Shown: positions 44,674 to 63,981 of the stretch, piece by piece
Position numbering within the stretch: the stretch's first letter is position 1
How the letters are laid out: every line of letters begins with the position of its first letter
IMG/VR virus record: IMGVR_UViG_3300042879_006196
Span: 1 to 64,000 of that record
Strand: one strand, 5' to 3'
DNA: 64,000 bases
Position numbers and translations under genes: made by a program
The notes under the pieces: model-generated
What the model was told of the DNA's origin: nothing
Databases searched by the model: none
The model's input: only the letters and a program-made list of their open reading frames with translations

Positions 44674-44774
44674 ATTTCCAGATTGTGTGTGAGGAGGGGG
44701 AATACCTTGTTTCCCCCTCCAAGGGCGGCGCCGAACTAATTTTCCAGGTTTAACATTTTCGAGTTATAATAGGT

Positions 44775-45071
44775 ATGATAGAACTAAACCCTAAACAACA
44801 AGAAGATTTTGATGCCATGCTCATCAAATTTGCATCATCGGATGTGCTTTACGATGAGAAGGAGTTTCTCAAATCGTGGAACGATCAAAACGTGGATGAA
44901 GAACAAATTGCTGAAATTGCAAAAGAGTACGTTTGGGAAGCCTATGAGCATTTAGATGGCTATGATATTGTATCAAAAATAGTTGATATAAAAGACGTGA
45001 TGGAACATCGCTTGAAAGACTACCTTGAGTGGCTTGTCAAAGAAAATAAGATTACAATCAACACTGCTTAA
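44775..45071 (+). CDS. Hypothetical protein
   Basis: Single-gene cassette. Confidence 0.7.
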   Translation: MIELNPKQQEDFDAMLIKFASSDVLYDEKEFLKSWNDQNVDEEQIAEIAKEYVWEAYEHLDGYDIVSKIVDIKDVMEHRLKDYLEWLVKENKITINTA

Positions 45072-45134
45072 TCCCCCTCCAAAGGGGAGACAGCCCGTTT
45101 TTTCCAGGTTTAACATTTCCTGATTATAATAGAT

Positions 45135-46010
45135 ATGAAATCAAAAGCACACGAAGCAGTTTTTAATCAAATGATGTCCCTAATGGAGCAAGGTCATATC
45201 CCTTGGAGAAAGCCTTGGAAGAACTCCGCACCTCGCAATGGTTCTACCAACCGCAGATATTCAGGTATCAACTTTTTCATTCTCTCAGCTAGTGGGTATG
45301 CTGATGAACGTTGGCTAACTTACAATCAAGTGAAAGAACTTGGCGGTGATGTCAAGAAAGGCGAAAAGTCTCGTCAGATTGTGTTCTGGAATATCCTTTC
45401 TAAAGAACAAGACGGCAAGAAAAAAAATATTCCAATCCTTAAATACTTCAATGTTTTTAATATTGAGCAAACTGAAGGAATCAAGTTTTCAAAGGAAGAA
45501 CTAGCCAAACTTGAAGAGTTGCGAAAATCTGAAGTTATTGAAGCTGAGGAGATTATCACTAAATACTCTGACAAACCCAAGACATTGTTTAACTATTCTT
45601 TGGCTTGTTATTCTCCAACTCAAGATACTGTGATGATGCCAGACAAAGCAAAGTTTAACACTACTGAGCATTTTTATGCAACATTATTTCATGAATACGC
45701 ACACAGCACAGGACACGCTAACCGCTTAAATCGTAAAGGTATTGCAAACTTTGACGCCTTTGCTTCAGAGCAATATTCTGAGGAAGAGCTTATTGCTGAG
45801 TTCACATCTGCATTTCTGTGCAATTACGCAGGTATTGACAACACCCTTGAGAACTCTACTGCATACATTCAAGGTTGGATGAAAGCCTTCAAAAATAACC
45901 CTGAAATGATTATAAGCTGTGCAAACAAGGCACAAAAGGCTGTAGATTACATTCTAGGAACAAATTCCGCAACTGAATCGCCAATTGTCAAAACAGAGAA
46001 CACTGCATAA
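45135..46010 (+). CDS. ardC: ArdC-like ssDNA-binding antirestriction protein with zincin-like domain
   Basis: PWRKPW, Y.GIN...L, WLTYNQ....GG.VKKGEK...I.FW, YF.VFNIEQT, FHEYAHSTGH..RL.R, YSEEEL.AE. Confidence 0.9.
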   Translation: MKSKAHEAVFNQMMSLMEQGHIPWRKPWKNSAPRNGSTNRRYSGINFFILSASGYADERWLTYNQVKELGGDVKKGEKSRQIVFWNILSKEQDGKKKNIPILKYFNVFNIEQTEGIKFSKEELAKLEELRKSEVIEAEEIITKYSDKPKTLFNYSLACYSPTQDTVMMPDKAKFNTTEHFYATLFHEYAHSTGHANRLNRKGIANFDAFASEQYSEEELIAEFTSAFLCNYAGIDNTLENSTAYIQGWMKAFKNNPEMIISCANKAQKAVDYILGTNSATESPIVKTENTA

Positions 46011-46073
46011 TCCCCCTCCAAAGGGGAGGCAGACCATATTTTCCAGGTTTAACATAATCTGATTATAATAGAT

Positions 46074-46724
46074 ATGGCACTTGACACAGTTTTCAACAAT
46101 ATCAGCTCACAAGAAATTAAGCACTACACTAAGTATTGGAAATCTATTCAACCCAAAACAGATGAGGAGATTTTCAAGCGTTGGCTTTTCGCCTACACCT
46201 CTATCCATACAACTTGGCAAGGAAACTTGAGAGGATACAATGCAATCAAAAACTTTGATGAGTGGATTGGTAGCAAGCAGATTCTGTCTGAGAAGTTGTT
46301 TGAATCTAAATGCGGTATGCACAACAAACGCACTGAATTCATTTGGAATTTTGCCCAAGATTTTTTCGCTAATACCAAAGATTTTCACAAGCAAAAAAAC
46401 GAGAGTTGGATTGATTTTCGTAATCGCTTAGTTAAAAAGTGTAATGGGATTGGTATTGCAAAAGTAAGTTTCACTTTAGAAATGTGCTTCCCAACACAAG
46501 CTGAAGTGGTATGTCTTGATGTTCATATGTTAAGACTATATGAAATTCCAATATTAAAGTTTGGTAGTAAAAAAGATATTGAAATTTATCAAAGCCATGA
46601 GCAGGATTGGATTCATCGTAGCAAGGCACTCAGAACGTCACCATACATCTCCAGATGTATTTTTTGGGACAAAAAGCAAAAACAATCTGATTCACGCTAT
46701 TGGAGTTGGGTTCTGGAGGGCTAA
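46074..46724 (+). CDS. HhH-type DNA N-glycosylase-like protein
   Basis: GIG.AK.SF...CLDVHMLR resembles the Ogg-type HhH motif with catalytic Lys and Asp. Confidence 0.6.
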   Translation: MALDTVFNNISSQEIKHYTKYWKSIQPKTDEEIFKRWLFAYTSIHTTWQGNLRGYNAIKNFDEWIGSKQILSEKLFESKCGMHNKRTEFIWNFAQDFFANTKDFHKQKNESWIDFRNRLVKKCNGIGIAKVSFTLEMCFPTQAEVVCLDVHMLRLYEIPILKFGSKKDIEIYQSHEQDWIHRSKALRTSPYISRCIFWDKKQKQSDSRYWSWVLEG

Positions 46725-46806
46725 TCCCCCTCCAAAGGGGTGGCAGAGCATTTTTTCCAGGTTTAACATTTCCCGATTATAATAAATGTAAGATTAAAGG
46801 AGAAAA

Positions 46807-47115
46807 ATGTTTAACCACACACTTAACAAAATCGCAGTAGACTTCACTTCCCGAACTGGCTCACGAAAGCGAGTCAGAGTCCCTGTCGCTGGTACTCGCC
46901 ACATCGGTTATCAGCCTGGTCAAAAGGTTGCCGTCGTCGCCTCTGACAAGGGTGGAGTAGAAATCTTCCCCGTCAGTGACCCTAAACGCTATGTCAACAC
47001 CTACACTGTTGAGAAGGATGGTGCAATTCGCATCTCAGCAGAAAAGTTCGGGTTGAAGACAGAAGACCTGTCTGTGACCTGTGACAAGCTCACAAACCAC
47101 GTGTTTGTGGCATAA
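46807..47115 (+). CDS. Hypothetical protein, possibly AbrB/MraZ-like fold
   Basis: AAGGAG Shine-Dalgarno; R.RVP...G..PG.KV and V..DG.IRI patterns; weak. Confidence 0.5.
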   Translation: MFNHTLNKIAVDFTSRTGSRKRVRVPVAGTRHIGYQPGQKVAVVASDKGGVEIFPVSDPKRYVNTYTVEKDGAIRISAEKFGLKTEDLSVTCDKLTNHVFVA

Positions 47116-47318
47116 GACTCGAAGGGGCAGGTATGGGTTGAACCTGCCCCAGACCTATAACGAGCTATGGTATGTAAGGAGAGCTTACATCGCCTCAAAG
47201 ATAACGGAGGTCATGAAACACTCGTTCCCTCACGGGGGGGGGGGGGGGAACCTTATCCCCCTCCAAGGGCTCCGCCGACCAAATTTTCCAGATTTAACAT
47301 ATTTCGATTATAATAGAT

Positions 47319-47603
47319 ATGTTAGATTACAAAACTAGAGAAGAAATTGAAAAAATTAATGCCGACACTTCCTTGGATACTCCAAAATCATTTGCTCCAT
47401 TTTTGAAAGCTGATTTGAATGGTTATAGTACCAACAGCTTAAGGTTTGCTACAGTTAAAGAATGTGACGAATTTTTGAGTGATTGTGCTTCTCGGTGGAC
47501 ATTAGTTCTGGATACAATTTCTTGTGTATCCTCAGATGAACCTAATTATATGTTCACTGAAGGTGAATTGAAAGAGTTAAATGAGGTTGGTGAAGATGCC
47601 TAA
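47319..47603 (+). CDS. Hypothetical protein
   Basis: Cassette ORF. Confidence 0.7.
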   Translation: MLDYKTREEIEKINADTSLDTPKSFAPFLKADLNGYSTNSLRFATVKECDEFLSDCASRWTLVLDTISCVSSDEPNYMFTEGELKELNEVGEDA

Positions 47604-47824
47604 TCCAAATTCCAGACCATGTGTGTTAAGATTTACTCATAATGGGCATAGCTATCAAATTGAATACCCAAGCATCCAGCAAGGGCAAAAAGCTATGCAG
47701 AGTTGGTTAAAGAAAAGCAAAATTGAAAACGTAAAGATTGTGGTGACCAGATAAAGCCAAATCCCCCTCCAAAGGGGAGGCAGACTGTTTTTTCCAGGTT
47801 TAACATTTCGAGATTATAATAGGT

Positions 47825-48016
47825 ATGAAACAAAAATATAGAGTGGTTCTTAGTACAATGGCTTATATGTCGCAAACTTTGGTAGTAGAAGCTGATTCAG
47901 AGAGTGATGCTGAAGATATTGTTTACGATAACGAGCTTTGGAATGACGGTGTATGGGAATACAATGGTATTACTTCTCAAACACCTGAATTAAATTATGT
48001 TGAGGAGGATAATTGA
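47825..48016 (+). CDS. KVRV...ELWNDGVW family protein
   Basis: Paralogue of 1..207. Confidence 0.7.
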   Translation: MKQKYRVVLSTMAYMSQTLVVEADSESDAEDIVYDNELWNDGVWEYNGITSQTPELNYVEEDN

Positions 48017-48184
48017 AACACAAAGTAAGAGTTACTGGTTGGGCTTATGTTGAGCAATACATAGAAGTGAATGCGGAAACCGAGGATGAAGCAGTGGATA
48101 AAGTAGAAAAAGCAGAGCTTTGGAATGATGGTGTTTGGAACTACATTCAGCTTGACGATATTGATTGTGTGGAGGTGGAGAAAT
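48013..48184 (+). CDS. KVRV...ELWNDGVW family protein (TTG start; end approximate)
   Basis: LKHKVRVTGWAYVEQYIEV.AETEDEA...ELWNDGVW; GAGGAGG Shine-Dalgarno. Confidence 0.65.
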
Positions 48185-48359
48185 GAAATTCATTGTTGAG
48201 ATAGGTGACGAGGTTGTTGCTGATTTACTTGGAATTGATCATCTAACACCTGAAGAGATAGAAAAATGTTTAAGTGATAGATATGATGAAATTGATGAGG
48301 TTATTCAAACAGGTTGCGACCAAGCATTAGAGATGTACTTTGATGAAGTGAAAGGATAG
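48183..48359 (+). CDS. Acidic hypothetical protein
   Basis: GGAG Shine-Dalgarno and overlap with the upstream ORF. Confidence 0.6.
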   Translation: MKFIVEIGDEVVADLLGIDHLTPEEIEKCLSDRYDEIDEVIQTGCDQALEMYFDEVKG

Positions 48360-48428
48360 TTTCAATCCCCCTCCAAAGGGGAGGCAGACTGTTTTTTCCA
48401 GGTTTAACATTTCGAGATTATAATAGAT

Positions 48429-48632
48429 ATGAAACACAAAGTAAGAGTTACAGGGTGGGGTTATATAGAAAAATACATCGAAGTGGAATCAGAATCCGAA
48501 GAGGAGGCAGTGGAGAAAGTAGAAAGTGGCAAGTTCGATGGAGTGTTCCAACTTTGGAATGGTGGAACTTGGAAATGTATTATACTTGAAAAAATTGATG
48601 TCGTTGAGGTGGAAGATGCTGTTAAAGATTAA
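48429..48632 (+). CDS. KVRV family protein
   Basis: MKHKVRVTGWGYIEKYIEVESESEEEA. Confidence 0.7.
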   Translation: MKHKVRVTGWGYIEKYIEVESESEEEAVEKVESGKFDGVFQLWNGGTWKCIILEKIDVVEVEDAVKD

Positions 48633-48846
48633 AACCGCCACCACCTACGACGATGCTCATGAGTTTTTGCAGTGCTGGGGTATTGAGAATCCAGAATCTT
48701 ATGGCATAAATAAAATCTTTTCTTTTGATGATTACGAGTTTGAACTATCTGATTTGGAAATAATTGAAAAGATTCTTGATTTGTGGATTGGGAAGTTTTC
48801 AGTACTTCATAGTGAGATTGGGTATGTGGTTACGGAATTTGAATAA
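48616..48846 (+). CDS. Hypothetical protein
   Basis: GAGGTG Shine-Dalgarno; overlapping ORF. Confidence 0.6.
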   Translation: MLLKIKTATTYDDAHEFLQCWGIENPESYGINKIFSFDDYEFELSDLEIIEKILDLWIGKFSVLHSEIGYVVTEFE

Positions 48847-48945
48847 TCCCCCTCCAAAGGGGAGGCAGACTGTTTTTTCCAGGTTTAACATATTATTTTT
48901 ATAATACAAGGAAGATTCAATTTAGATTGTGTATAATTAAAGAGT

Positions 48946-49021
48946 GGCTCATAGGACAACTGGTGGAGTCGCCGCCCTGTCACGGCGGAGATGGAGGGTT
49001 CAATGCCCTCATGGGTCGCCA
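48946..49021 (+). tRNA. trnD: tRNA-Asp(GUC)
   Basis: CCGCC-CTGTCAC-GGCGG anticodon arm, T-arm, CCA. Confidence 0.9.
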
Positions 49022-49027
49022 ACATAC

Positions 49028-49102
49028 TGACACCTAGCTCAACGGTAGAGCTTTTCGCTGTTAACGAAGGGGTTATAGGTTCGAATCCTATGGTGTCAGC
49101 CA
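49028..49102 (+). tRNA. trnN: tRNA-Asn(GUU)
   Basis: TGACACC/GGTGTCA acceptor stem, CTGTTAA loop, GGTTCGAATCC, CCA. Confidence 0.92.
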
Positions 49103-49105
49103 TAA

Positions 49106-49180
49106 GCTGGATTAGCTCAGCGATAGAGCAACCGCCTTGTAAGCGGTAGGTCAAGAGTTTGAATCTCTTATCCAGCTCCA
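49106..49180 (+). tRNA. trnT: tRNA-Thr(UGU)
   Basis: GCTGGAT/ATCCAGC acceptor stem, ACCGC-CTTGTAA-GCGGT, CCA; atypical TTTGAAT T-loop. Confidence 0.88.
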
Positions 49181-49235
49181 CATCCACACAATCTCACCAA
49201 TTTTCCAGGTTTAACACAATCTGATTATAATAGAT

Positions 49236-49940
49236 ATGGAAATCATTTACACAGCTACTGTTGGTTCTAAAATGCATGGTTTGTCAACACCACAATCTGA
49301 CGAAGACACCAGATACATTTACAAACTCTCTCTCAGAGAAGTGATTTCACCATTTGCCACCGATAGAACTAAAACCACTTCTTCCAATGGCGAAGATACC
49401 GAATCTTGGGAGCTAAGAAACTTTGTTAAGCATCTTACCTCAGGCAATCCTACAATGTATGAAGTAATTAAATCACCATTGTATAAAAAAGATGGTGATT
49501 CTGAATTGCTCAGAATAATTCCTAACTATGCTTTTGATGGAAGAAAGATTTTATTGGCTCACATTGGTTATGCTGAGGCACAACTAAAAAGATACTTGAG
49601 AAACTTTAAGCAACCAGCTGAGGCTAACACATTGAAAAGAATACCTAAATCAATTGTTGCCGCTTATAGAGTATTAGCACAGGCTGACCAGCTTCTTAAT
49701 ACAGGAACATTTGAGCCTGTAATAAAAGACTACTCACAATCTTTACATGATAAGCTGATGACAATCAAGTTGATGTCCACTGACGACATCACTTTAGATT
49801 TTGTCAAAGAACATGAGTTAGGTATTGAAAAAGGTATTCAAGATTTGAAGACTATGTTTGAGGATTTGCCAAGTTCAATAAAAGATAAAAAGCCAGATAT
49901 TGATGCCTTAGAGTTACTGCTCATGCAGTTTTACAAGTGA
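49236..49940 (+). CDS. Pol-beta-superfamily nucleotidyltransferase
   Basis: GS..HGL.TP.SD.D.R, D....EL..F...L..GNP...E. Confidence 0.8.
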   Translation: MEIIYTATVGSKMHGLSTPQSDEDTRYIYKLSLREVISPFATDRTKTTSSNGEDTESWELRNFVKHLTSGNPTMYEVIKSPLYKKDGDSELLRIIPNYAFDGRKILLAHIGYAEAQLKRYLRNFKQPAEANTLKRIPKSIVAAYRVLAQADQLLNTGTFEPVIKDYSQSLHDKLMTIKLMSTDDITLDFVKEHELGIEKGIQDLKTMFEDLPSSIKDKKPDIDALELLLMQFYK

Positions 49941-50002
49941 CCCCCTCCAAAGGGGAGGCAGATCGTTTTTTCCAGGTTTAACATAATCTGATTATAATAG
50001 AT

Positions 50003-50245
50003 ATGGATATCAACAACAAGGAGTATATCGAAGATTTAACCTCAATCCGCACAGCTTTTTCTAGTATTTTGTCTGAACTCAAGACTTCGGAAGTCAGAAA
50101 AAAAATCGAATTAAACATTGCTGAACTTACTTTTGCAATTAAAATCTCAGAAATTGAATCTGAAGTTGATGATGAAGAACTGTCAAATGAAGGAGTTCAA
50201 GATTCATTGATAAATGATATTTCTAGTTGTAGTGGTGAAATTTGA
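50003..50245 (+). CDS. Hypothetical protein
   Basis: Cassette ORF. Confidence 0.65.
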   Translation: MDINNKEYIEDLTSIRTAFSSILSELKTSEVRKKIELNIAELTFAIKISEIESEVDDEELSNEGVQDSLINDISSCSGEI

Positions 50246-50442
50246 GGCAACATTTAGAAAATCACATGATTCATGGAATCAATATTGAAGTAGATTGTGT
50301 AGATGATGGAGATGATACTTATTATGAGCTGTACGATGGCGACGATTGTATCAATCTTGGTGTTCCTTTCTATGAAAAGCCCACAGAGACACAAATCAAA
50401 GAATTTTTGATTAAAGAAAAAATTTTGCAAGACCATGTTTAA
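50242..50442 (+). CDS. Hypothetical protein (TTG start)
   Basis: TTGA overlap. Confidence 0.6.
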   Translation: MRQHLENHMIHGINIEVDCVDDGDDTYYELYDGDDCINLGVPFYEKPTETQIKEFLIKEKILQDHV

Positions 50443-50508
50443 TTCTCCCCCTCCAAAGGGGAGTCAGATTGTGTTTTCCAGGTTTAACACAATCTGATTA
50501 TAATAGAT

Positions 50509-50784
50509 ATGAGTCACGATTTAACATCATTACTTATGTGTTGGTTTGACACAGGTACTTTGGATTTTTTGATTATTGATAAAAAAGAAATTTTTGATAC
50601 AACTTTTATTGATATTATCTTTGAAAAAAGAAATTATTTTGAAGATTTTCTAAAATGTGTAAATGGACAGATACCTTCGTGGCTTGAAGACGACCACAAT
50701 ATCTTTGACATTAAACCTTTTGTTGAAGACATATCTTATTCTGATATGATTGTTAGGCTCAAGGCTGGAGGATTGCATCTTTAA
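50509..50784 (+). CDS. Hypothetical protein
   Basis: Cassette ORF. Confidence 0.7.
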   Translation: MSHDLTSLLMCWFDTGTLDFLIIDKKEIFDTTFIDIIFEKRNYFEDFLKCVNGQIPSWLEDDHNIFDIKPFVEDISYSDMIVRLKAGGLHL

Positions 50785-50847
50785 TTCCCCTCCAAAGGGG
50801 AGTCAGATTGTGTTTTCCAGGTTTAACACAATCTGATTATAATAGAT

Positions 50848-51129
50848 ATGATTCAGGAAGAAAAGAATAACAGCGAAAAATTTCCAATCCACATATCAGA
50901 CATGCCTTACTGGTCAGGCATGCCTTACTGGATAACAGTTTTTGGGAAAGTTATAGGAGAAGCTGTTTACATTGAAGTTCACAGCAGTGTACACAAAACC
51001 AAGGTCTGGACAATGCCAACTGGATTCCAAATTGAATACTGGAATGATTACAACAAAACAGCTATGCAAGATATTTTAACTAAAATTGTTGAAAGATATG
51101 GCTTGGTACAAGTGACCCGCTGGGAATAA
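50848..51129 (+). CDS. Hypothetical protein
   Basis: Cassette ORF. Confidence 0.7.
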   Translation: MIQEEKNNSEKFPIHISDMPYWSGMPYWITVFGKVIGEAVYIEVHSSVHKTKVWTMPTGFQIEYWNDYNKTAMQDILTKIVERYGLVQVTRWE

Positions 51130-51279
51130 ATTTCAAACTCAATGAAACGAAGTGTTCACTAAAATAGCTATATTCACCACGGTGGTAAATATAGCACAAA
51201 CTGTGAACAGAGAGCAATCCCCTCATAACAATCTCAGCCCGTTTTTTTCCAGGTTTAACATAATCTGATTATAATAGAT

Positions 51280-51519
51280 ATGGAAAAGATTACCCTTAAC
51301 CTTCAAAACATTGAAGTAGTACTTACACCTGAAGAATTACAATCTTTCTTTTCTGGCGTTCTCAAGTCAGATTTGCATATGAACAATGATTCAGTTTATA
51401 AGCTATTAAAAGTGCTTGAGTATGCAAAGTACCCTGACCAAGAGTATGTACTTCTTAACCCAGAAGGTTGCTTTACAGGTAAGCAACTAGCCGAAAAGAA
51501 TGGTGTCAAGTTTGGATAA
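51280..51519 (+). CDS. Hypothetical protein
   Basis: Cassette ORF. Confidence 0.7.
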   Translation: MEKITLNLQNIEVVLTPEELQSFFSGVLKSDLHMNNDSVYKLLKVLEYAKYPDQEYVLLNPEGCFTGKQLAEKNGVKFG

Positions 51520-51693
51520 TCACGAAGATATTGATTACGAAGAATTATTTAATCTTAGCGAAGAAGAATTATTCTCTTTGATTCAAATTTGCGAAATTGG
51601 TTTATTAAGTATTTTTGCATGGGAATAACCCCCTCCAAAGGGGAGCCAGCCCGTTTTTTCCAGATTTAACAGATTGTGTTTATATTAGATTGT

Positions 51694-52226: not shown

Positions 52227-52243
52227 TAACAAGGAACACAACC

Positions 52244-52762: not shown

Positions 52763-53449
52763 ATGAAACTATTAGGAGTTAATTCTGACGCAAAAACAAC
52801 AAAAGGCACGAAATATGGTTACCTTACTGGGATTCTCTATCTCGCACCTGCGAAGCAATCAGGGTTTGAAGTCTGTCCTTCACGCTCAGTGGGTTGCACT
52901 GAGGCTTGTTTGTACACTAGCGGTCATGGTAGCTTTCAAAATGTTAAAGACGCACGAATAAGAAAAACACAATGGTTATTCAATGACCGACCAGGTTTTT
53001 TACAAGCTCTGCGGGCTGACGTGAAGGCACTTGTAAAGAAAGCTGAAAAACAAGGTTTAGTCCCATGCGTTAGGCTTAATGGGACATCTGACATAGGGTG
53101 GGAAGGTGTAGCGAATGACCTTATGGCTGAATTTAGTAACGTTCAATGGTATGATTATACTAAAATACAAGCCAGAATGATGCGATATCTTGAAGGTAAA
53201 ATGCCTAGCAATTATCATCTCACTTTTAGTAAGAGTGAAAACAATTGGGATAAATGTCTAGAGGTATTGAAACATGGCGGTAACGTAGCCGCAGTATTCA
53301 ATAAACTACCAGAAACATTCATGGGTTATGCCGTCATTGACGGCGATAAATCAGATCTACGCTTCCTAGACCCTTTTAACGTTATTGTGGGCTTAAAAGC
53401 CAAAGGAATGGCAAGAAAAGATAAATCTGGATTCGTAATAACAATTTAG
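52763..53449 (+). CDS. GP88-like Cys-rich phage protein
   Basis: LYLAPA...VCP..S.GC...CL..SG.G, AR..KT, RLNGTSDI.WE, YDYTK, D..DLRFLDP. Confidence 0.75.
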   Translation: MKLLGVNSDAKTTKGTKYGYLTGILYLAPAKQSGFEVCPSRSVGCTEACLYTSGHGSFQNVKDARIRKTQWLFNDRPGFLQALRADVKALVKKAEKQGLVPCVRLNGTSDIGWEGVANDLMAEFSNVQWYDYTKIQARMMRYLEGKMPSNYHLTFSKSENNWDKCLEVLKHGGNVAAVFNKLPETFMGYAVIDGDKSDLRFLDPFNVIVGLKAKGMARKDKSGFVITI

Positions 53450-53535: not shown

Positions 53536-54111
53536 ATGACATTATTAGGAATTGACACAGAATCAGGGGGAATTTCATTAGATTATGACTTACTCACGCT
53601 TACTATGTGTATTATAAAGGATTATGAAATTGTAAGAACAATTGATATGAAATTAAAACCAGACCCTATTGATGGTCGTTCCTCATACTATGTTCAAGCT
53701 GAGGCTTTGGGAGTGAATGGCATTAACATTCCAGAACACGATTTGAAAGCTATGCCTTACAAAGAATCAAAACAATTTATTTATGATTGGCTCAAAGATG
53801 CTAAAAATGATTTTGGTAAACTTTTACCTTTTGGCAATGGTGTAAGCAGAGACATTCAACTCATCACTAAATTTACAATCTCACCAAAAACATGGGAGAC
53901 GGTTGTTATGAAAAATCCAATTGAGCTTACTTCTATTGGCAATAACCTTAAAATGCTAGGTCTGATACCTATGGAGCAATCCTTAGCACTTAGCAAAATT
54001 GCCTCATACTTTGGCGTAGAAATTGACGAAGAAAAAGTACACACTGCTGAATACGATGTTTGGCTAGGTACTCAAGTGTTGAAGCACTATAACCAATTGA
54101 TAACAAAATGA
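53536..54111 (+). CDS. DnaQ/DEDDh 3'-5' exonuclease
   Basis: GIDTE.GG (ExoI), AL.VNGI, HTAEYDV (ExoIII). Confidence 0.85.
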   Translation: MTLLGIDTESGGISLDYDLLTLTMCIIKDYEIVRTIDMKLKPDPIDGRSSYYVQAEALGVNGINIPEHDLKAMPYKESKQFIYDWLKDAKNDFGKLLPFGNGVSRDIQLITKFTISPKTWETVVMKNPIELTSIGNNLKMLGLIPMEQSLALSKIASYFGVEIDEEKVHTAEYDVWLGTQVLKHYNQLITK

Positions 54112-56805: not shown

Positions 56806-56828
56806 CATTTTTATCGTATAATAGGTTG

Positions 56829-56904
56829 GGGTGCATAACTCAATGGCTAGAGTAACTCGCTTTTAACGAGTAAGTTCTGGGTTCGAGTCCCAGTGCACCC
56901 ACCA
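56829..56904 (+). tRNA. trnK: tRNA-Lys(UUU)
   Basis: GGGTGCA/TGCACCC acceptor stem, ACTCG-CTTTTAA-CGAGT, GGTTCGAGTCC, CCA. Confidence 0.93.
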
Positions 56905-56968
56905 ATCCCCCTCCAAGAGGGCGGCAGATCGTTTTTTCCAGGTTTAACACAATCTGATTATAATAGAT

Positions 56969-57673: not shown

Positions 57674-57761
57674 GGCTTCAAAACGCCCCACAGAGCATTC
57701 CCCCTCCAAAGGGGCGGCAGACCATTTTTTCCAGGTTTAACACAATCTGATTATAATAGAT

Positions 57762-58079
57762 ATGGGAAATATTCTTGACGTAACAGTAAGAGATTATACA
57801 ATCCGCTATCATAAGCTCTACGAAGAAGTAGGCACTTTAACAGATGTAGTCATATCAGATGACTATGATAGGATTGATTTGTCATTGGAAGACGATAGCT
57901 TCAACTGTGAAGACCCGTTCGCCCTGATAGAATGGATTTTTAAGAGAACTAAATACAATTCCGAACTAACTGAACTACTTTTTTTTCATTACAACGTGGC
58001 ACAAGGTGTGAGAATTCACGGTAAGTACTATGTTTTCGAGGATTGGAAAGAACTCTACGAAAAACATATTAGTGATTAA
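57762..58079 (+). CDS. Hypothetical protein
   Basis: Cassette ORF. Confidence 0.7.
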   Translation: MGNILDVTVRDYTIRYHKLYEEVGTLTDVVISDDYDRIDLSLEDDSFNCEDPFALIEWIFKRTKYNSELTELLFFHYNVAQGVRIHGKYYVFEDWKELYEKHISD

Positions 58080-58158
58080 ATGATTCACTAATAAATCCCC
58101 CTCCAAAGGGGAGGCAGATTGTGTTTTCCAGGTTTAACACAATCTGATTATAATAGAT

Positions 58159-58299
58159 ATGACAGTACAAGAACTGATAGAAAAGTTGCAAGAGATTGAA
58201 GACAAAAGCAAAATTTGCATGCTTAATGACCCAGAGGGTACATTAGTGAATGAAATTACATGGATTGGTGAGTGGGAGTGTGTTGTAGAAATCAGATAA
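58159..58299 (+). CDS. MTVxELIE-family small protein
   Basis: MTVQELIEKLQEIEDKSKIC; 46 aa. Confidence 0.7.
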   Translation: MTVQELIEKLQEIEDKSKICMLNDPEGTLVNEITWIGEWECVVEIR

Positions 58300-58401
58300 A
58301 ATATTCAGACAAGTATTGCTGAGTGTTCTTTTAGCTTTCCCCTCCAAAGGGGAGGCAGATTGTGTTTTCCAGGTTTAACACAATCTGATTATAATAGATA
58401 T

Positions 58402-58668
58402 ATGAGCGAACTTCATGAAATTAAAAACAAATTTGACGTGGGTGATATTTATCTCTACTATACGCCAGTAGATAACCCATATAAGTTCCGCAAAAGTGAA
58501 ATTACCTATGACGAGCGCAAGGAAACTTTTGACTTTCTTAAGGCAAATGACAAACTCCCAGATTATGTCCAAGATGTTTGGTATGCCCCATCAAGTGGAG
58601 GAGCTAAAAAGCTTTCATTATCCACTGTTAAATACACTGGTGCTTTCATCACTGGAATGCCAGTGTAA
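58402..58668 (+). CDS. Hypothetical protein
   Basis: Cassette ORF. Confidence 0.7.
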   Translation: MSELHEIKNKFDVGDIYLYYTPVDNPYKFRKSEITYDERKETFDFLKANDKLPDYVQDVWYAPSSGGAKKLSLSTVKYTGAFITGMPV

Positions 58669-58728
58669 TCCCCCAAAGGGGAGGCAGATTGTGTTTTCCA
58701 GGTTTAACACAATCTGATTATAATAGAT

Positions 58729-58896
58729 ATGACTATGACAGTACAAGAACTAATTGAACAACTACAAAAGATTGGTGATAAAAGCAAAATTTGCTTAGTT
58801 GATGACGGAGACGGCGGGGCATTAGGTGAAATTAAATCTGTTTATGATGCACAATATGTAGAAATCAACATAAGATATTCATACAAGTATTGCTGA
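58729..58896 (+). CDS. MTVxELIE-family small protein
   Basis: MTMTVQELIEQLQKIGDKSKIC; 55 aa. Confidence 0.7.
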   Translation: MTMTVQELIEQLQKIGDKSKICLVDDGDGGALGEIKSVYDAQYVEINIRYSYKYC

Positions 58897-59171
58897 GTGT
58901 TCTTTTAGCTTCCCCCTCCAAAGGGGAGGCAGATTGTGTTTTCCAGGTTTAACATAATCTGATTATAATAGATATATGGAAGATGAAGCATATTTCTTTT
59001 GGAAAAATTTGGCAGATCTATTGGAGCTTGAATTGATCGGGTGGAGTAATTTTGCAACTGGAACTTTCAGGGACGCCTCACTTAATACAAGCGTTCAAAT
59101 TCAATATTGGTTTGCTAAGAGAATACAGGATAAAATCATAGAATTATGAATTCTGAAGGTATAATAGATAT

Positions 59172-59648
59172 ATGAGCCATCTTTACGAGGATTTAGATTC
59201 AGCTTTCTCCGCACTCTATGATTATAGTTGTGAGGGCGGTTCTTACGGGGTTGATGAAGATGATAATTCCAAAAGCCACCATTATAAAAGTGTCGATGGC
59301 ATGATTCTTATGGAATTGAGCAGGGATTGCTTGGTTTCAACAATTACCGTAGGTGATGAATTCCGTGTAGTGCGTAACCTTGACTGGGAAGACTGGTATC
59401 ACTTTGTAACTGGTGACGAAGAAAGTTTCATTGCATTTGTTTCTGAGTTGATTCCACCGCCTAAAAATACATGGCATCATACTTGCGAAAAATGCTACAA
59501 GCAAAACTCTAGTGTTTCAATGATTTATGACCCATTTGAGTATGATATAAATAACCGCGAGGTGGTACTGGCAACATTGTGTTCAGATTGTTTTAGTGAG
59601 GACTATGGTCTTCAACAAGAATTACACAATCTTGCAATGGAAGTGTAA
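59172..59648 (+). CDS. Hypothetical protein with C-terminal CxxC pairs
   Basis: TATAATAGATAT-ATG start; CEKC...CSDC. Confidence 0.7.
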   Translation: MSHLYEDLDSAFSALYDYSCEGGSYGVDEDDNSKSHHYKSVDGMILMELSRDCLVSTITVGDEFRVVRNLDWEDWYHFVTGDEESFIAFVSELIPPPKNTWHHTCEKCYKQNSSVSMIYDPFEYDINNREVVLATLCSDCFSEDYGLQQELHNLAMEV

Positions 59649-59711
59649 TTCCCCTCCAAAGGGGAGGCAGATTGTGTTTTCCAGGTTTAACACAATCTGA
59701 TTATAATAGAT

Positions 59712-59945
59712 ATGACAGTACAAGAACTAATTGAACAACTACAAAAGATTGAAGACAAAAGCAGAGAGTGCATAATAGATGATGGTGGCGGCGGTGCATT
59801 TTATGATGTTGAATCTGTTTTTACTGAGAGAGAGTATGTACTAATCTCAAGATATTCAAGCGAGTATAATAATTCAATATATTCAAACGAGTATAATAAT
59901 TCAACAGTAGTAATGTGTGAAGAATATTCAGACAAGTATTGCTGA
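59712..59945 (+). CDS. MTVxELIE-family small protein
   Basis: MTVQELIEQLQKIEDKSREC. Confidence 0.75.
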   Translation: MTVQELIEQLQKIEDKSRECIIDDGGGGAFYDVESVFTEREYVLISRYSSEYNNSIYSNEYNNSTVVMCEEYSDKYC

Positions 59946-60020
59946 ATGTTCTTTTAGCTTTCCCCTCCAAAAGGGAGGCAGATTGTTTTTTCCAGGTTTA
60001 ACATTTCCTGATTATAATAG

Positions 60021-60410
60021 ATGTAAGAACATTGAAAAGAGAATAAGAATCGCCCGAATTAAGTATCGGAAAGAGGAGCTGACCCAACAGTGAACTCTAA
60101 AAAACGCTGGGTAATTGGGTAAGACGAGCCACACGTCATAAAGAAAGTGGTGAAGCGGGAAACAAATGAAAGTGAAAGGCTTTCTGGGTTTTTAACTTGG
60201 CATCCGTGTATAAGGGGTATGCTCCCACCGAGGCGATTTTTAATCTTATATCTCTTACAGAATAATGTAAAAAGTTTAGGGGACGCCCTATAGGGACTCA
60301 CGTAACCCGAAATACGTGGTTGAACAATCATGTTCCGATGAGGCAAGTACATCGTTAAATCAATCTGCTAGGGAGGTGGGCTAATTACCCACCCCCGCAT
60401 GTTTTTAAGA
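60021..60410 (+). ncRNA. Candidate structured ncRNA cassette of about 390 nt
   Basis: Full promoter module but no ORF; hairpins CACGTA/TACGTG, CGATG/CATCG, GTGGG/CCCAC, TTACA/TGTAA. Confidence 0.5.
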
Positions 60411-60474
60411 TTCCCCCTCCAAAGGGCAGGCAGATCGTGTTTTCCAGGTTTAACATTTTCGAGTTATAATAGGT

Positions 60475-60741
60475 ATGAGCAGACACTCAGCACAAACAAA
60501 AGATGGAAGAAGCATGGTTATCGGTTTTGATGCCCCCTTAAGCGAATACTTTATTCAGGTATATGGGGACAATGATGAGTTGGTGGCTGACTTTTCTTCA
60601 TCAGGAATGTCAATGGTAAAAATGCACCCACCAATGTCAAATTCAAAAATTCTGGAAACTATTCAGTCAATCATGAGCGATGATGACCAGAAGCGACTGG
60701 CTCCTCAGATTGAACTACTATGCTTGGATTTACCTTTCTGA
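60475..60741 (+). CDS. Hypothetical protein
   Basis: Cassette ORF. Confidence 0.7.
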   Translation: MSRHSAQTKDGRSMVIGFDAPLSEYFIQVYGDNDELVADFSSSGMSMVKMHPPMSNSKILETIQSIMSDDDQKRLAPQIELLCLDLPF

Positions 60742-60810
60742 GCAGATTCCCCCTCCAAAGGGGCGGCAGCCCGTTTTTTCCAGGTTTAACACAATCTGAT
60801 TATAATAGAT

Positions 60811-61209
60811 ATGAGCGAAAAAAACCTAGTTTTTCATGTTTTCGGATTTAACATCATTCAGCGACCAGTTCACAGTTACCTTGATGGCAGAGCGGGAAAG
60901 CTAAGAAGACTTCCACAAATACAAGTAGGTGAAACTGTTAGTTATTATGGGCATTCTCACACAGAGTACGGAAGATGTATAGAAGATGATATTTTTGACA
61001 CAGTAGACGAGGCTTTGGAAGTAGCTAAAACCCGTTTAGAGCATGAAAAATTGTCTTTGGCAGAAAAAATCCAATACCTACAAGAAAAATTAGCAGAGTG
61101 TGAAAATCAAGAAATAAAAATAAAACTTTATGAAGACATTCTGAAGGAAACAGCAATTAAAGAAATGAAAAGACTTGCCAAGGAGAATAACCTTGAAGTT
61201 TCATTTTAA
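60811..61209 (+). CDS. Hypothetical protein
   Basis: Cassette ORF. Confidence 0.7.
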   Translation: MSEKNLVFHVFGFNIIQRPVHSYLDGRAGKLRRLPQIQVGETVSYYGHSHTEYGRCIEDDIFDTVDEALEVAKTRLEHEKLSLAEKIQYLQEKLAECENQEIKIKLYEDILKETAIKEMKRLAKENNLEVSF

Positions 61210-61223
61210 TTAAAAATAAAAAT

Positions 61224-61303
61224 TGGGCATGTTGCATTGTTAAGAATATTTGGAAAATCACCTTTTAGGTTTAAGTGCGGGTTCAAATCCCACTGCTCCA
61301 CCA
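61224..61303 (+). pseudogene. Degenerate tRNA-like element
   Basis: GCGGGTTCAAATCCCAC T-arm and GCTCCACCA 3' end; no recognisable D-arm or anticodon arm. Confidence 0.55.
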
Positions 61304-61366
61304 ATTCCCCCTCCAAGAGGGAGTCAGCCCGTTTTTTCCAGGTTTAACATAATCTGATTATAATAG

Positions 61367-61750
61367 ATGTACCTACAAGGTAACATCAAGGAAAAAAAGA
61401 TGCCAAAATCAGCCCTATATCAATCAGCAATCACAAATCGAAAACTCCTCACTGACCACCTCACGTTAATCGAGGAATATCTTGAAGCAGGAGAAGCGAC
61501 CACAGAAATTTACTTCTATGGTGCGAACAACTCCATCATCAGAAAATACACAAAAACCTCTAAGTGGTCAACATCAATTGGCAAGCAGAGAGTCAGAACA
61601 AGCCATGAGATTTTTGTCTCCATTAATACAGGCTTTCTTCCTCGTGGCACAAAGCGAATGAAGGTGAAAAGCCCATTTGTTGAAAATGAAACCAAGACTG
61701 TTTTGAGTAGTATGCCAGTTACAGTTCAATGCCAATCAATTGCCATCTAG
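61367..61750 (+). CDS. Hypothetical protein
   Basis: Cassette ORF; alternative start at MPKS. Confidence 0.65.
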   Translation: MYLQGNIKEKKMPKSALYQSAITNRKLLTDHLTLIEEYLEAGEATTEIYFYGANNSIIRKYTKTSKWSTSIGKQRVRTSHEIFVSINTGFLPRGTKRMKVKSPFVENETKTVLSSMPVTVQCQSIAI

Positions 61751-61829
61751 TAAGATGGCAATTGATTCCCCCTCCAAAGGGGAGGCAGAAAATTTTTTCC
61801 AGGTTTAACATTTCCTGATTATAATAGAT

Positions 61830-62099
61830 ATGGGTAAGAACCATAAAATCAAAGAAACCTTCGAAGTAGGTAGAAACTTCATCTCAATCTTCCCTGAAGA
61901 ATCCTTCCTTGAGCAACTTGTTCTTGAGGGTGATGTTCTCAAGTTCAAGATGAAATCTGGTGCAAGTGTTTACAGCACTACCATCACTGATACCATGAAG
62001 CGAGAATTGCTCGCTGTTGCCAGAGAAGGTGGCTCAATCGGCACCTTTTACAATACAAGGCTTCGACCCTTGCCTATAACAAAGTCAGATTCTTTCTGA
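61830..62099 (+). CDS. KTSC-like domain protein
   Basis: SFL......L...KSG..VY........GGSIG.FYN..LR. Confidence 0.55.
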   Translation: MGKNHKIKETFEVGRNFISIFPEESFLEQLVLEGDVLKFKMKSGASVYSTTITDTMKRELLAVAREGGSIGTFYNTRLRPLPITKSDSF

Positions 62100-62164
62100 A
62101 TGATAGGGGAATAAAATCCCCTATCTAAAATTTTCCAGGTTTAACAAAACCTGATTATAATGAA

Positions 62165-62304
62165 TGTAAGAACGAAAGTTCTACAAGGTGACGACTCTGC
62201 ACCTTGAGGGGAACGGAATTGCCCCTTGAAACCAGTAGCTCCTGTCAAATGGAGTGACGACATCTATTAAGTGCTTTGGGAATAGTTTCTAGAAAGAGGC
62301 TATT
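62165..62304 (+). ncRNA. Candidate small structured RNA cassette of about 140 nt
   Basis: Promoter but no ORF; AGAAC-GAAA-GTTCT, CAAGGTG/CACCTTG, AGGGG/CCCCT, CTCC/GGAG and GAATAG/CTATTC stems in series. Confidence 0.6.
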
Positions 62305-62366
62305 CCCCCTCCAAGAGCCCCGCCGCCCGCTTTTTCCAGGTTTAACACAATCTGATTATAATAGAT

Positions 62367-62765
62367 ATGACATTAGAACAACTGCAACAAATCTTTCCAG
62401 GTGCTACGGCTGATACTTGGCATCAGCACCCAAACGGTGGTGGATGGGTGCAAAATACTGCAAAGGTATATGAAACTGCTTGGGTTGGCAAAGATGCCGT
62501 AGTGTATGGGGATGCTGTGGTGCTTTGGAATTCTTCTATATCGGGGAATGCTAGGGTGTTGGCTGACGGGTATGGGTCTGGAGGAGAAGAAATGACCTTA
62601 GAAAAAGCGTTGGAGCGGATTGAGTTCCTTGAGAACGCTCTGAACGGAGCGATTGGTTCCTGCATTAAGGATGAGGAATGTGATTTCACGAAAAAGCCAG
62701 AACTGGTGGAATACATTAAGCAAAACTGGTTGAATGCATTAATCAAAGAAATAGATAATGAATAA
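62367..62765 (+). CDS. Protein with a short beta-helix-like repeat fused to an MTLE.AL.RIEFLENAL module
   Basis: HPNGGGWV.NTA.V...AWVG.DAVVYGDA; second half similar to 62758..62964. Confidence 0.65.
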   Translation: MTLEQLQQIFPGATADTWHQHPNGGGWVQNTAKVYETAWVGKDAVVYGDAVVLWNSSISGNARVLADGYGSGGEEMTLEKALERIEFLENALNGAIGSCIKDEECDFTKKPELVEYIKQNWLNALIKEIDNE

Positions 62766-62964
62766 CATGACATTAGAAGAGGCATTGAAACGGATTGAGT
62801 TCCTTGAGAACGCTTTAGACCAAGCCATTGACTTGGCAGTAATCCGAACTTGGGATTTAGGATATATTGTAGCAGGTTATGGTGGTGATAATGCAACTTA
62901 TGACGTTAGAGAGCCACAAAGAGCTTTTCCTGCTCTAGTGGAATACTTGGAGGGGAAGGAGTGA
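62758..62964 (+). CDS. Hypothetical protein
   Basis: MTLEEALKRIEFLENAL. Confidence 0.7.
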   Translation: MNNMTLEEALKRIEFLENALDQAIDLAVIRTWDLGYIVAGYGGDNATYDVREPQRAFPALVEYLEGKE

Positions 62965-63029
62965 AAACCCCCTCCAAGAGTTTCGCTGCCCGCTTTTTCC
63001 AGGTTTAACACAATCTGATTATAATAGAT

Positions 63030-63248
63030 GTGATGTTACCTTACGAATATCTCAACGAAGTGCTTCAAAAGGGCGTTTGCCCAAATTGCAACAAGCCCAG
63101 CAAGTCTATTGACTTCCAATTCTCATATGGCGTGTACGCTGGTGTGATGTGCACTAAATGTGCCATCAATGGCTACAGAGACTCCTGCGGTCACAAGCGA
63201 CCAATGGGCACTAGAGCCGAGTACGAGTCCTTTGGAGAGGATTATTAA
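63030..63248 (+). CDS. Small Zn-finger-like protein (GTG start)
   Basis: CPNC...CTKC. Confidence 0.65.
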   Translation: MMLPYEYLNEVLQKGVCPNCNKPSKSIDFQFSYGVYAGVMCTKCAINGYRDSCGHKRPMGTRAEYESFGEDY

Positions 63249-63311
63249 TCCCCCTCCAAAGGGGCGGCAGATCGTTTTTTCCAGGTTTAACACAATCTGA
63301 TTATAATAGAT

Positions 63312-63515
63312 ATGAGCAGTGATACAAAAGAATCGTTGGTTGTACTATCTCTCCTCGGAGGATTTGTTCCGTTGGTCTTTGCAATAGTGTGTCTCCCCAA
63401 GTATACGGAAGCCTCACTTTATTGGCTGAAGTTCGCCATGACCGCTTCAATTGTGTGTCCCGCAGTTGGATTTACAATTGACAGAGTGTGGAGAAAAGTC
63501 ACAAAAAATGACTAG
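63312..63515 (+). CDS. Small membrane protein
   Basis: Two hydrophobic segments. Confidence 0.7.
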   Translation: MSSDTKESLVVLSLLGGFVPLVFAIVCLPKYTEASLYWLKFAMTASIVCPAVGFTIDRVWRKVTKND

Positions 63516-63723
63516 CATCTATGAAGAACTCAAAAACGCTGGTGTGGAAATCTCCAACTGGCAAAGTGACCTTTATTGTCCAAAAAATGCCCAGACTATC
63601 CCAATAGTCAAAAAGTATGAAAAAGAACACTATATTTCTACTTTCAAAAACTTAAACGACGGTCTCACTTGGTATGATGTTGCTTTTGCTTACGACCCTT
63701 ACTGGTCAAAATTAGGAAAGTAA
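63508..63723 (+). CDS. Hypothetical protein
   Basis: Overlapping ORF; SDLY.P, AFAYDPYW. Confidence 0.65.
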   Translation: MTSIYEELKNAGVEISNWQSDLYCPKNAQTIPIVKKYEKEHYISTFKNLNDGLTWYDVAFAYDPYWSKLGK

Positions 63724-63786
63724 TTCCCCTCCAAGGGGGCGGCAGACCATTTTTTCCAGGTTTAACACAATCTGATTATAATAAAT

Positions 63787-63981
63787 ATGAGCAATAAAAA
63801 GGCTTCAATCAAAAAACGAATAACAATGAATGGCAAAACATCAATTGTTGAAATAGATGTCTTCCAGCCCACTGGACATATGTCTTACTCAGGATTCGGT
63901 GCTCATGGAAGACAAAATCGAAAATCCGAGCGTCGCCAAAATCGAGCTGAAGCTCGCAACGTAATGAGAGGTGCATTTTAA
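63787..63981 (+). CDS. Small basic protein
   Basis: Cassette ORF. Confidence 0.7.
   Translation: MSNKKASIKKRITMNGKTSIVEIDVFQPTGHMSYSGFGAHGRQNRKSERRQNRAEARNVMRGAF

Follow-up and report, generated by a model that had tools for sequence, protein, structure and literature searches.

Promoter-early stem-loop (PeSL) elements of T4-type phages are composites of a stem-loop, a sigma-70-like early promoter with -35 and -10 boxes about 17 nt apart, and a Shine-Dalgarno sequence and start codon at the 3' end (PMC2839356, PMC4122927). They are repeated between small ORFan genes in a hyperplastic region, and they bound the insertions, deletions, and replacements that distinguish close relatives. Deletion leaves one chimeric element, crossovers have been mapped between the -10 box and the ATG, and degraded half-elements and closely stacked copies occur. 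Formation of excised mini-circles, detected by inverse PCR, is a further feature of these elements. Three other systems resemble parts of this arrangement. Integrons hold one-directional arrays of mostly single-gene cassettes separated by repeated, hairpin-capable sequences, but their cassettes are promoterless, end in attC sites, are expressed from a common Pc promoter, and depend on the IntI tyrosine recombinase. In leaderless genes of Deinococcus-Thermus, a TANNNT/TATAAT box lies 6 to 7 nt upstream of a strongly preferred ATG without a ribosome-binding site (PMC12340547), as is also reported for Thermus phage phiYS40 (Sevostyanova et al. 2007). Host-takeover and early-gene clusters of large virulent phages, such as the SPO1 terminal-redundancy module and the T4 early regions, contain many small genes, each or nearly each with its own strong host-type promoter and a terminator, that encode anti-host functions; their promoters are similar but are not near-identical 40- to 70-nt modules fused to the start codon, and module-bounded shuffling at population scale has not been described for them.

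The locus considered here lies in an uncultivated lake phage (IMGVR_UViG_3300042879_006196; 347,392 bp), of which the first 64,000 nt constitute the window analyzed. An initial annotation had described, between positions 44713 and 63981, about 36 near-identical hairpin-promoter modules of 60 to 70 bp separating ORFs, tRNAs, and noncoding RNA candidates, and this observation is confirmed. A 26-nt promoter string matches 32 places in the window with up to 3 mismatches, all on the + strand, against 0 expected from 100 shuffles. A repeat search recovers a 90-nt family with 36 copies covering hairpin plus promoter and a 59-nt promoter family with 53 copies. A pattern count within the array finds 39 promoter cores (TTYCAGNTTTAACA), of which 36 have the C-rich stem-loop upstream and 29 have an ATG exactly 4 nt after TATAAT. 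The array does not stop at the window end but runs to 68.2 kb of the record, with 53 consecutive cores over 23.5 kb at a median spacing of 454 nt. The core occurs 79 times in the genome, at 1.2 to 68.2 kb plus three copies at 320 to 336 kb, and never on the reverse strand. The description "near-identical" is slightly generous: a 38-nt promoter-to-ATG string is exact in 17 copies, but the hairpin half varies more, with an average of 13 of 62 positions differing between modules when anchored at the -10 box, partly because of small indels. The array and an example module are as follows.

44713 to 63981, + strand: the part of the cassette array that lies in the window, with 39 promoter cores, 36 of them with the C-rich stem-loop.
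58097 to 58114, + strand: stem-loop part of an example module (CCCCCTCC AAA GGGGAGG), with a predicted stem of 5 G:C-rich pairs; in relatives the CCCC/GGGG stem is kept while the loop varies (GCAA, ACTT, ACAA, and others).
58124 to 58158, + strand: promoter part of the same module, comprising a T-run, the -35-like TTTCCA (58125 to 58130), the invariant TTTAACA (58133 to 58139), the -10 box TATAAT (58149 to 58154), and AGAT (58155 to 58158); the ATG of the ORF follows at 58159.

A promoter scan scores every module as TTTCCA, 18 nt, TATAAT, with 10 of 12 matches. In contrast to PeSL elements, the stem-loop lies upstream of the T-run and -35 element rather than between or over the promoter boxes, the density of modules is much higher, with all in one orientation, and tRNA and RNA cassettes are included. 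The stem-loop is only a weak terminator candidate. It is no more stable than shuffled sequence (z between -0.7 and +1.1), its T-run starts 9 to 12 nt after the stem, and only 4 modules pass a terminator scan, although modules in the 1- to 44-kb part of the window have canonical hairpins abutting the T-run.

The cassettes contain ORFs, tRNAs, and ORF-less sequences, as the initial annotation had described, and its gene calls (ArdC, glycosylase, nucleotidyltransferase, and exonuclease) hold.

45135 to 46010, + strand: ORF of 291 aa, an ArdC-type antirestriction protein (ArdcN, 5e-30, plus the zincin peptidase domain MPTase-PolyVal, 2.5e-32).
46074 to 46724, + strand: ORF of 216 aa with a weak 8-oxoguanine glycosylase HhH match (Ogg-HhH, 2.9e-06, 27.4 bits, cutoff 27).
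48946 to 49180, + strand: tRNA cassette (Asp-GTC, Asn-GTT, Thr-TGT) behind the module at 48877, which has no ATG after its -10 box.
49236 to 49940, + strand: ORF of 234 aa, an RlaP nucleotidyltransferase (3e-19); in the relative G001 its orthologue (92% aa identity) has different neighbors.
52763 to 53449, + strand: ORF of 228 aa matching Pfam GP88 (4e-48) and phrog_1617, with no known function.
53536 to 54111, + strand: ORF of 191 aa similar to the DNA polymerase exonuclease subunit family (phrog_192, 2.7e-07).
56817 to 56904, + strand: half-module (only TATAATAGGT, no -35 part) directly in front of tRNA-Lys (56829 to 56904).
59160 to 59648, + strand: half-module (TATAATAGAT only) in front of a 158-aa ORF (59172 to 59648); the orthologous cassette in the related lake contigs L172 and L175 has a full module.
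58159 to 59945, + strand: three paralogous mini-cassettes (58159 to 58299, 58729 to 58896, and 59712 to 59945; MTVQELIE...) interleaved with unrelated cassettes, with a fourth copy at 38541; the copies are 73 to 83% identical in nucleotides.
60021 to 60410, + strand: ORF-less cassette, a conserved (84 to 96% nt) candidate structured RNA of about 390 nt with no Rfam family.
62163 to 62300, + strand: second ORF-less cassette, which shares the 5' motif GTAAGAAC with 60021 to 60410, starting at the 5th base after the -10 box; a similar RNA is present in G001.
44742 to 44779, + strand: module sharing a rare 39-nt promoter allele with the module at 60442.

Most cassettes have no family with a Pfam or PHROG function, and only ArdC points to an anti-host or antidefense role, such that the reservoir of anti-host genes proposed in the initial annotation remains an inference for the others.

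The start codon is in a fixed register with the promoter, a feature that the initial annotation had missed. In this genome it lies 4 nt after the -10 box in 48 modules, 46 of which open ORFs of at least 50 aa, and in other contigs the same holds for 336 of 481 modules, 316 with ORFs of at least 40 aa. Pfam domains begin at residues 2 to 10 of the ORFs, indicating that these ATGs are the true starts, and the median dN/dS of cassette ORFs against orthologues is 0.25. The 4-nt gap leaves no room for a Shine-Dalgarno sequence, unlike in PeSL elements, suggesting that the mRNAs are probably leaderless or nearly so. This inference rests on sequence alone, as the only RNA-labeled runs look like DNA. 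Across 542 modules, position 4 after the -10 box is a pyrimidine in 93% and position 5 a purine in 92%, and ORF-less modules carry a conserved GTAAGA block starting at that same position 5. Shine-Dalgarno use in the rest of the genome is low (15%, against a 5% control). However, the gap is 2 nt shorter than the 6 to 7 nt seen in Deinococcus-Thermus (PMC12340547) and in the other leaderless-looking genes of this genome (TATAAT-N6/7-ATG); a 6- to 7-nt gap occurs only in a minority of modules and in genes outside the putative early class. A polymerase starting at the usual distance would begin on the G of the ATG.

This short distance, together with a 16-nt invariant block (TTTTTCCAGNTTTMAC) that extends conservation well beyond a 6-nt -35 hexamer, raises the possibility that the promoter is read not by the unmodified host holoenzyme but by a phage-specified machine, either an injected RNA polymerase or factor or a phage sigma. 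The genome encodes at least two sigma-like proteins and several giant ORFs of 2,800 to 4,100 aa with no known function. This alternative is considered unlikely, since the -10 box is a perfect TATAAT with TTTCCA at 18 nt. Moreover, a sigma-factor gene lies behind the promoter copy at 320341, which fits an early class and implies that something present before phage gene expression must read the promoter. No Rpb2_6 domain and no T7-type polymerase domain was found, although the control search for the T7-type domain returned nothing anywhere, making that negative result weak.

Homologous arrays occur in lake metagenomes, where more than 80 contigs carry the promoter, and whole genes are swapped, lost, and reordered exactly at the modules among these relatives. 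Of 220 internal ends of nucleotide-level homology segments, 161 (73%) lie within a module, against 19% expected (P about 1e-67), although such ends must fall at cassette borders whenever neighbors differ, whatever the mechanism, and contigs from related samples are not independent. Only 24 of 103 successive shared cassette pairs keep their spacing, and 63 keep their order. G001 is collinear with this genome from 70.6 to 131 kb, yet its array is scrambled. Contig L145 (95 to 98.5% identical) lacks exactly the cassette at 66611 to 67107, and its junction is a chimeric module with the crossover in a shared 12-nt stretch at the -10 box. In contig L113, the modules at 44742 and 60442 are fused, joining the gene upstream of 44.7 kb directly to cassette 60475. 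Fixed cassette order without repeat-bounded indels had been named beforehand as the outcome that would count against shuffling, and neither condition holds.

Because modules share exact stretches of 38 nt and more, short-read assemblers could misjoin contigs at them, and Logan unitigs break at every module and produce spurious joints. An assembly artifact is nevertheless very unlikely to account for the shuffling. The same alternative orders recur in independently assembled contigs from different samples (2-27-2-16-20-48-6-30 in L128, L165, and L163; 42-11-12-..-13-28-..-8 in L172, L152, L186, and L161), and the order of this genome recurs in L157 and L180. The variant arrays are 75 to 90% identical to this genome and are therefore different genomes, and the 12 shared bases at the L145 crossover are shorter than any assembler k-mer.

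A second alternative is that modules are only expression signals, strong early promoters with 3' stem-loops kept alike by selection for promoter strength, with cassette differences arising by ordinary gene gain and loss and by illegitimate recombination; breakpoints would then appear to lie in modules only because these are the sole conserved intergenic sequence. In favor of this view, the most invariant blocks are the promoter elements, which are conserved across two diverged lineages while hairpin loops and spacers vary, and paralogous cassettes within the genome are old (73 to 83% nt identity), giving no sign of very recent duplication. It is considered unlikely, however, because the L145 junction is a clean chimera of the two flanking modules with no loss or gain of bases, and the two modules joined in L113 share a rare allele. 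In addition, adjacent modules are more alike than random pairs in 7 of 7 arrays, indicating homogenization, and half-modules and empty back-to-back modules occur, as in PeSL elements (PMC4122927). The variable blocks on either side of the invariant core are unlinked (odds ratio, 1.07).

A site-specific system, integron-like or HUH/REP-like, in which an unrecognized recombinase acts on the folded stem-loop, is very unlikely. A conserved stem-loop does sit at the cassette borders, and one reverse-oriented copy of the C-rich element lies near 67.8 kb. But no tyrosine recombinase (Phage_integrase, PF00589) or Y1 transposase (Y1_Tnp) domain was found in the whole 347-kb genome, whereas the control search for the former succeeded in 14 of 14 genomes, consistent with the earlier characterization of the array as integrase-free. 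The two mapped crossovers lie in the promoter half (at the -10 box, and between the T-run and the ATG) rather than in the stem-loop, whose sequence is poorly conserved in the sister lineage. Each cassette has its own promoter, and no attC architecture was seen, albeit without modeling of such sites, so that "integron-like" is an analogy only. As in integrons, the cassette pool is large, with 121 protein families in this small sample.

The explanation favored here, with reasonable confidence, is that the array is the early-gene region of the phage, built from self-contained expression cassettes. In this view, each module holds a short G:C stem-loop at the end of the previous gene, a T-run, and a promoter read by the host RNA polymerase that supplies both the transcription start and the translation start. 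As direct repeats of 40 to 70 nt in one orientation, the modules would also serve as substrates for homologous recombination, for which the phage has its own RecA (109489 to 110691), and recombination between them would delete, insert, duplicate, and reorder whole cassettes without breaking their expression, which is the PeSL mechanism. The anatomy, copy number, fixed ATG register, purifying selection on the ORFs, module-bounded rearrangements among relatives, and chimeric module at a one-cassette indel are established by the analysis, whereas early timing, use of host RNA polymerase, the exact transcription start, terminator or 3'-protective activity of the stem-loop, the involvement of RecA, and anti-host roles for the cassettes are inferred. 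The interpretation given in the initial annotation is thus partly supported: the modules are of the PeSL kind and cassette order is not fixed, but excision as circles and capture from outside remain inferences from the repeats.

A more far-reaching reading, which is tentative and judged somewhat less likely than not, is that the module is a "plug-and-play" leaderless expression unit, with a promoter fused to the start codon at a noncanonical 4-nt distance, such that any ORF recombined behind it is transcribed and translated without a ribosome-binding site. The lake population of these phage-G-like giant phages would then share an integrase-free pan-array of well over 100 cassette families (proteins, tRNAs, and structured RNAs) reshuffled by homologous recombination. 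This would be the first PeSL-type system outside T4-type phages, and one in which transcription start, translation start, and recombination site are the same 40 nt. Promoter/stem-loop-mediated shuffling would then not be peculiar to T4-type phages but a convergent or general way for large virulent phages to keep a fast-evolving set of early, probably host-directed, genes. The array also provides a catalogue of small, putatively early genes in which to seek antidefense or host-takeover activity, natural population data on how fast they turn over, and a compact test case for how leaderless mRNAs are made when the -10 box lies only 4 nt from the start codon.

The phage itself is not T4-type, a point also missed in the initial annotation. 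Its portal matches Portal_Mu, with the best cultured match being Bacillus phage G at 29.7% identity, and its replicative polymerase is DnaE-type.

The 26-nt promoter string given in the initial annotation matches 32 places in the window with up to 3 mismatches, all on the + strand, and none is expected by chance. Repeat finding yields a 90-nt family with 36 copies (stem-loop plus promoter) and a 59-nt promoter family with 53 copies. Between positions 44713 and 63981 there are 39 promoter cores (TTYCAGNTTTAACA), of which 36 have the C-rich stem-loop and 29 have ATG exactly 4 nt after the -10 box. The window is the first 64 kb of a 347,392-bp IMG/VR virus record; in that record, the core occurs 79 times and never on the reverse strand, at 1.2-68.2 kb with three more copies at 320-336 kb. 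The hairpin-type array proper runs from 44.7 to 68.2 kb, with 53 cores at a median spacing of 454 nt, and the end previously assigned at 63981 is therefore only the end of the window. The repeated modules that were first noticed are thus confirmed.

In each module, after the stop codon of the previous gene comes a stem-loop, which in this genome is CCCCCTCC-AAA-GGGGAGG, followed by CAG plus a short variable block, a run of 4-6 T, the invariant CCAGNTTTAACA, a 9-nt variable spacer, TATAAT, four bases (mostly AGAT) and ATG. A consensus scan scores every module as TTTCCA, 18 nt, TATAAT, which is 10 of 12 matches. The ORF starts at a fixed +33 from TTCCAG in about 40 of 54 modules, and genome-wide, 48 early modules have ATG at 4 nt, 46 of which open an ORF of at least 50 amino acids (aa). 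Pfam domains begin at residues 2-10 of the ORFs, and orthologue pairs give a median dN/dS of 0.25, indicating that these are real genes that start at the ATG of the module. There is no room for a Shine-Dalgarno sequence. Four cassette ORFs (50509-50784, 50848-51129, 60811-61209, and 47825-48016) have dN/dS above 1 (1.9-4.3) against their closest orthologues, but synonymous divergence is very low in these comparisons (0.02-0.05), such that statistical power is poor.

Sequence evidence alone, which is indirect, favors a transcription start at the A of the ATG. Across 542 modules from all contigs, the 4th base after the -10 box is a pyrimidine in 93% and the 5th is a purine in 92%, and in modules that drive no ORF, a conserved block (GTAAGA, ATAAGA, or GGAAGA) begins at that same 5th base. 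The phage uses Shine-Dalgarno sequences rarely (15%, against a 5% control), and other genes in the genome show TATAAT-N6/7-ATG. Among these are large non-early genes at 170166, 227830, 231049, 277478, 287248, and 315857, outside the window, in which TATAAT (often TGTATAAT) lies 6-7 nt before the ATG, so that leaderless expression may be general in this phage. The gap itself argues against a leaderless transcript: at 4 nt, it is 2 nt shorter than in those genes and shorter than the 6-7 nt reported for Deinococcus-Thermus leaderless genes (PMC12340547), and a polymerase starting at the usual distance would begin on the G of the ATG. On balance, we consider the leaderless reading somewhat more likely than not, the alternative being translation from read-through RNA, with the AU-rich promoter acting as an unstructured initiation region. 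Public runs provided neither transcript ends nor structural variants, since the RNA-labeled runs that hold the sequence are probably DNA, and Logan contigs break at each module with joints whose sides are only 25-56 nt.

The stem-loop is small, with 4-5 G:C pairs, and is no more stable than shuffled sequence (z between -0.7 and +1.1). The T-run begins 9-12 nt after it, and only four modules pass a standard terminator scan. In the sister lineage, however, the CCCC/GGGG stem is kept while the loop changes (GCAA, ACTT, ACAA, TCAT), which argues for a real RNA-level hairpin, and modules in the 1-44 kb part of the window carry canonical hairpins that abut the T-run. A terminator or 3'-protective role is therefore plausible but unproven.

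A second hairpin, or operator, formed by CAGATTGTG and CACAATCTG around the -35 region was considered and rejected. As RNA it folds well (z = -3.3), but the two arms are not associated across 537 modules (odds ratio 1.07, P = 0.77), and each arm is just one copy of a 9-mer that is enriched across the whole genome. This 9-mer, CAGATTGTG (e.g., window positions 38500-38530, 58116-58124, and 58140-58148), occurs 142 times on the forward strand and 100 times on the reverse strand of the 347-kb genome, against about 1.2 expected per strand; it is spread over both strands and lies inside genes. The 10-mer is also enriched in the close relatives G001 and G002 but not in the clade at 51% identity or in a 4.4-Mb metagenome-assembled genome (MAG) that holds array contigs. 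A host uptake-like or Chi-like role is not supported, since this MAG has only 22 copies and distant relatives lack the 9-mer; no function was found for it. A candidate second promoter class, GATTGTGTGGTATA, turned out to be the conserved 5' end of a paralogous gene family. Four large paralogous genes (518-941 aa; genome positions 68906, 72587, 74897, and 303185, outside the window) share a conserved 5' end of more than 50 nt that starts GATTGTGTGGTATAGATATTGC.

The genome encodes a DnaE-type polymerase and a Mu-like portal fused to a DUF559 nuclease, and the best cultured match to the portal is that of Bacillus phage G, at 29.7% identity; it is not a T4-type phage. No blastn match exists in the INPHARED phage collection, and the exact own-type promoter is absent from IMG/VR. 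A search for a phage-encoded RNA polymerase recovered no Rpb2_6 domain, and a T7-type search also gave nothing but was uninformative, since its control was not detected anywhere. Two to three sigma-like genes are present: Sigma70_r2-containing ORFs lie at 320341-320669 and 120036-120176, outside the window, and one (198 aa) lies directly behind the early-type promoter copy at 320341, suggesting a sigma cascade. The simplest reading is an early regulon read by the host holoenzyme, followed by phage sigma factors. Because the 16-nt invariant block around the -35 position is longer than a sigma factor needs, a phage-specified factor remains a rival explanation. Clues to the host are weak. Single promoter-pattern hits in Flavobacterium genomes lie inside a coding sequence and are chance matches. 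Many array-bearing contigs (L231, L233-L235, L237, L239, L240, and L243) are binned in a GenBank MAG labeled "Bacteroidetes bacterium WB6_2A_118," but this is either a weak host hint or a mis-binned phage, and it conflicts with the TATAAT-type promoters seen elsewhere in the phage.

A search with DnaE recovers two close IMG/VR relatives (82-83% aa identity) and a clade at about 51%. The relative G001 (62 kb) starts inside a homologous array, whose modules use TTTCAC instead of TTTAAC and have different hairpin loops. A relaxed promoter pattern found only that contig in IMG/VR, but in metagenomes it found more than 80 lake contigs, some with 20-33 modules. Of 220 internal blastn HSP ends within the array, 161 (73%) lie inside a module, against 19% expected. 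Clustering of 446 cassette proteins from 82 arrays gives 121 families, 40 of them singletons. Against 15 contigs that share at least 4 families with this genome, only 24 of 103 successive shared pairs keep their spacing and 63 keep their order, whereas near-identical strains (contigs L157, L180, and L143) are collinear. As a control, G001 is collinear with this genome from 70.6 to 131 kb at 60-92% aa identity, whereas its array is scrambled. Alternative orders recur in contigs from different samples, which argues against assembly chimeras.

Junctions between cassettes point to exchange between modules. Contig L145 is 95-98.5% identical to this genome but lacks exactly the cassette between the modules at 66611 and 67107. 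Its junction is a chimera in which everything up to the spacer comes from the left module and everything after the -10 box comes from the right module, with the crossover in a shared 12-nt stretch; because 12 bases is shorter than any assembler k-mer, this is a real molecule. Contig L113 joins the module at 44742 to the cassette at 60475, and the two corresponding modules of this genome share a rare 39-nt allele. Adjacent modules are more alike than random pairs in all seven arrays tested, and the variable blocks left and right of the invariant core are unlinked (odds ratio 1.07). Half-modules lie at 56817 and 59160, and empty back-to-back modules lie at 67.1-68.2 kb, mirroring the degraded PeSLs (stem-loop/promoter elements) of the literature (PMC4122927). 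At this end of the array (L009, positions 3100-4200), promoter cores are only 56-89 nt apart with no ORF between them, and one reverse-oriented copy of the C-rich element also occurs there, which look like footprints of cassette loss. In T4-type phages, the mini-circle crossovers were likewise mapped between the -10 box and the ATG (PMC2839356).

No tyrosine recombinase or Y1 transposase domain is present in the genome, but a RecA homologue is present at 109489-110691. Homologous recombination between 40-70-nt direct repeats is the best-supported mechanism, and a site-specific system is unlikely.

The following cassette contents are confirmed, along with the tRNA cassettes:
45135-46010, ArdC
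46074-46724, a weak glycosylase-like ORF
49236-49940, an RlaP nucleotidyltransferase
52763-53449, a GP88-family protein
53536-54111, an exonuclease-like ORF

Most other cassettes have no family. An anti-host role for the array as a whole, as proposed in the initial annotation, is an inference from ArdC, the early position, and the small ORFan content. The proposed interpretation is supported in part: its central idea survives the test that had been set for it, in that cassette order is not fixed among relatives and module-bounded indels occur. The system works like PeSL elements, differing from them in that the host genome is not that of a T4-type phage and that there is no Shine-Dalgarno sequence. 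The module array, the genes opened at its ATGs, and the rearrangements at modules rest on direct analysis of the sequences, but the transcription start, any activity of the stem-loop, and what most of the cassettes do are inferred.

At least two cassettes encode no protein (60021-60410 and 62163-62300). The first is a candidate RNA of about 390 nt, conserved at 84-96% nucleotide identity, with 99 predicted pairs, 2 compensatory pairs, and indels confined to single helices. Both share a 5' GTAAGAAC motif, and neither matches an Rfam family. A tRNA-like 3' piece (T-arm plus acceptor, ending CCACCA) lies at 61237-61307, after ORF 60811-61209; it is not called by ARAGORN but is conserved in G001 and in contigs L160 and L184.

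Elsewhere in the window, at 14479-18000 and 22150-33500, there is a very large tandem array of mini-ORFs of 49-72 aa. Each starts MINTDCVE (ATGATTAATACAGATTGTGTGG), every 150-190 nt, often with overlapping stop and start codons. Their bodies are made of 12-nt (4-aa, xQVW-like) periodic units, GC skew is +0.5 to +0.6, and a homologous array is present in metagenome contig L118.
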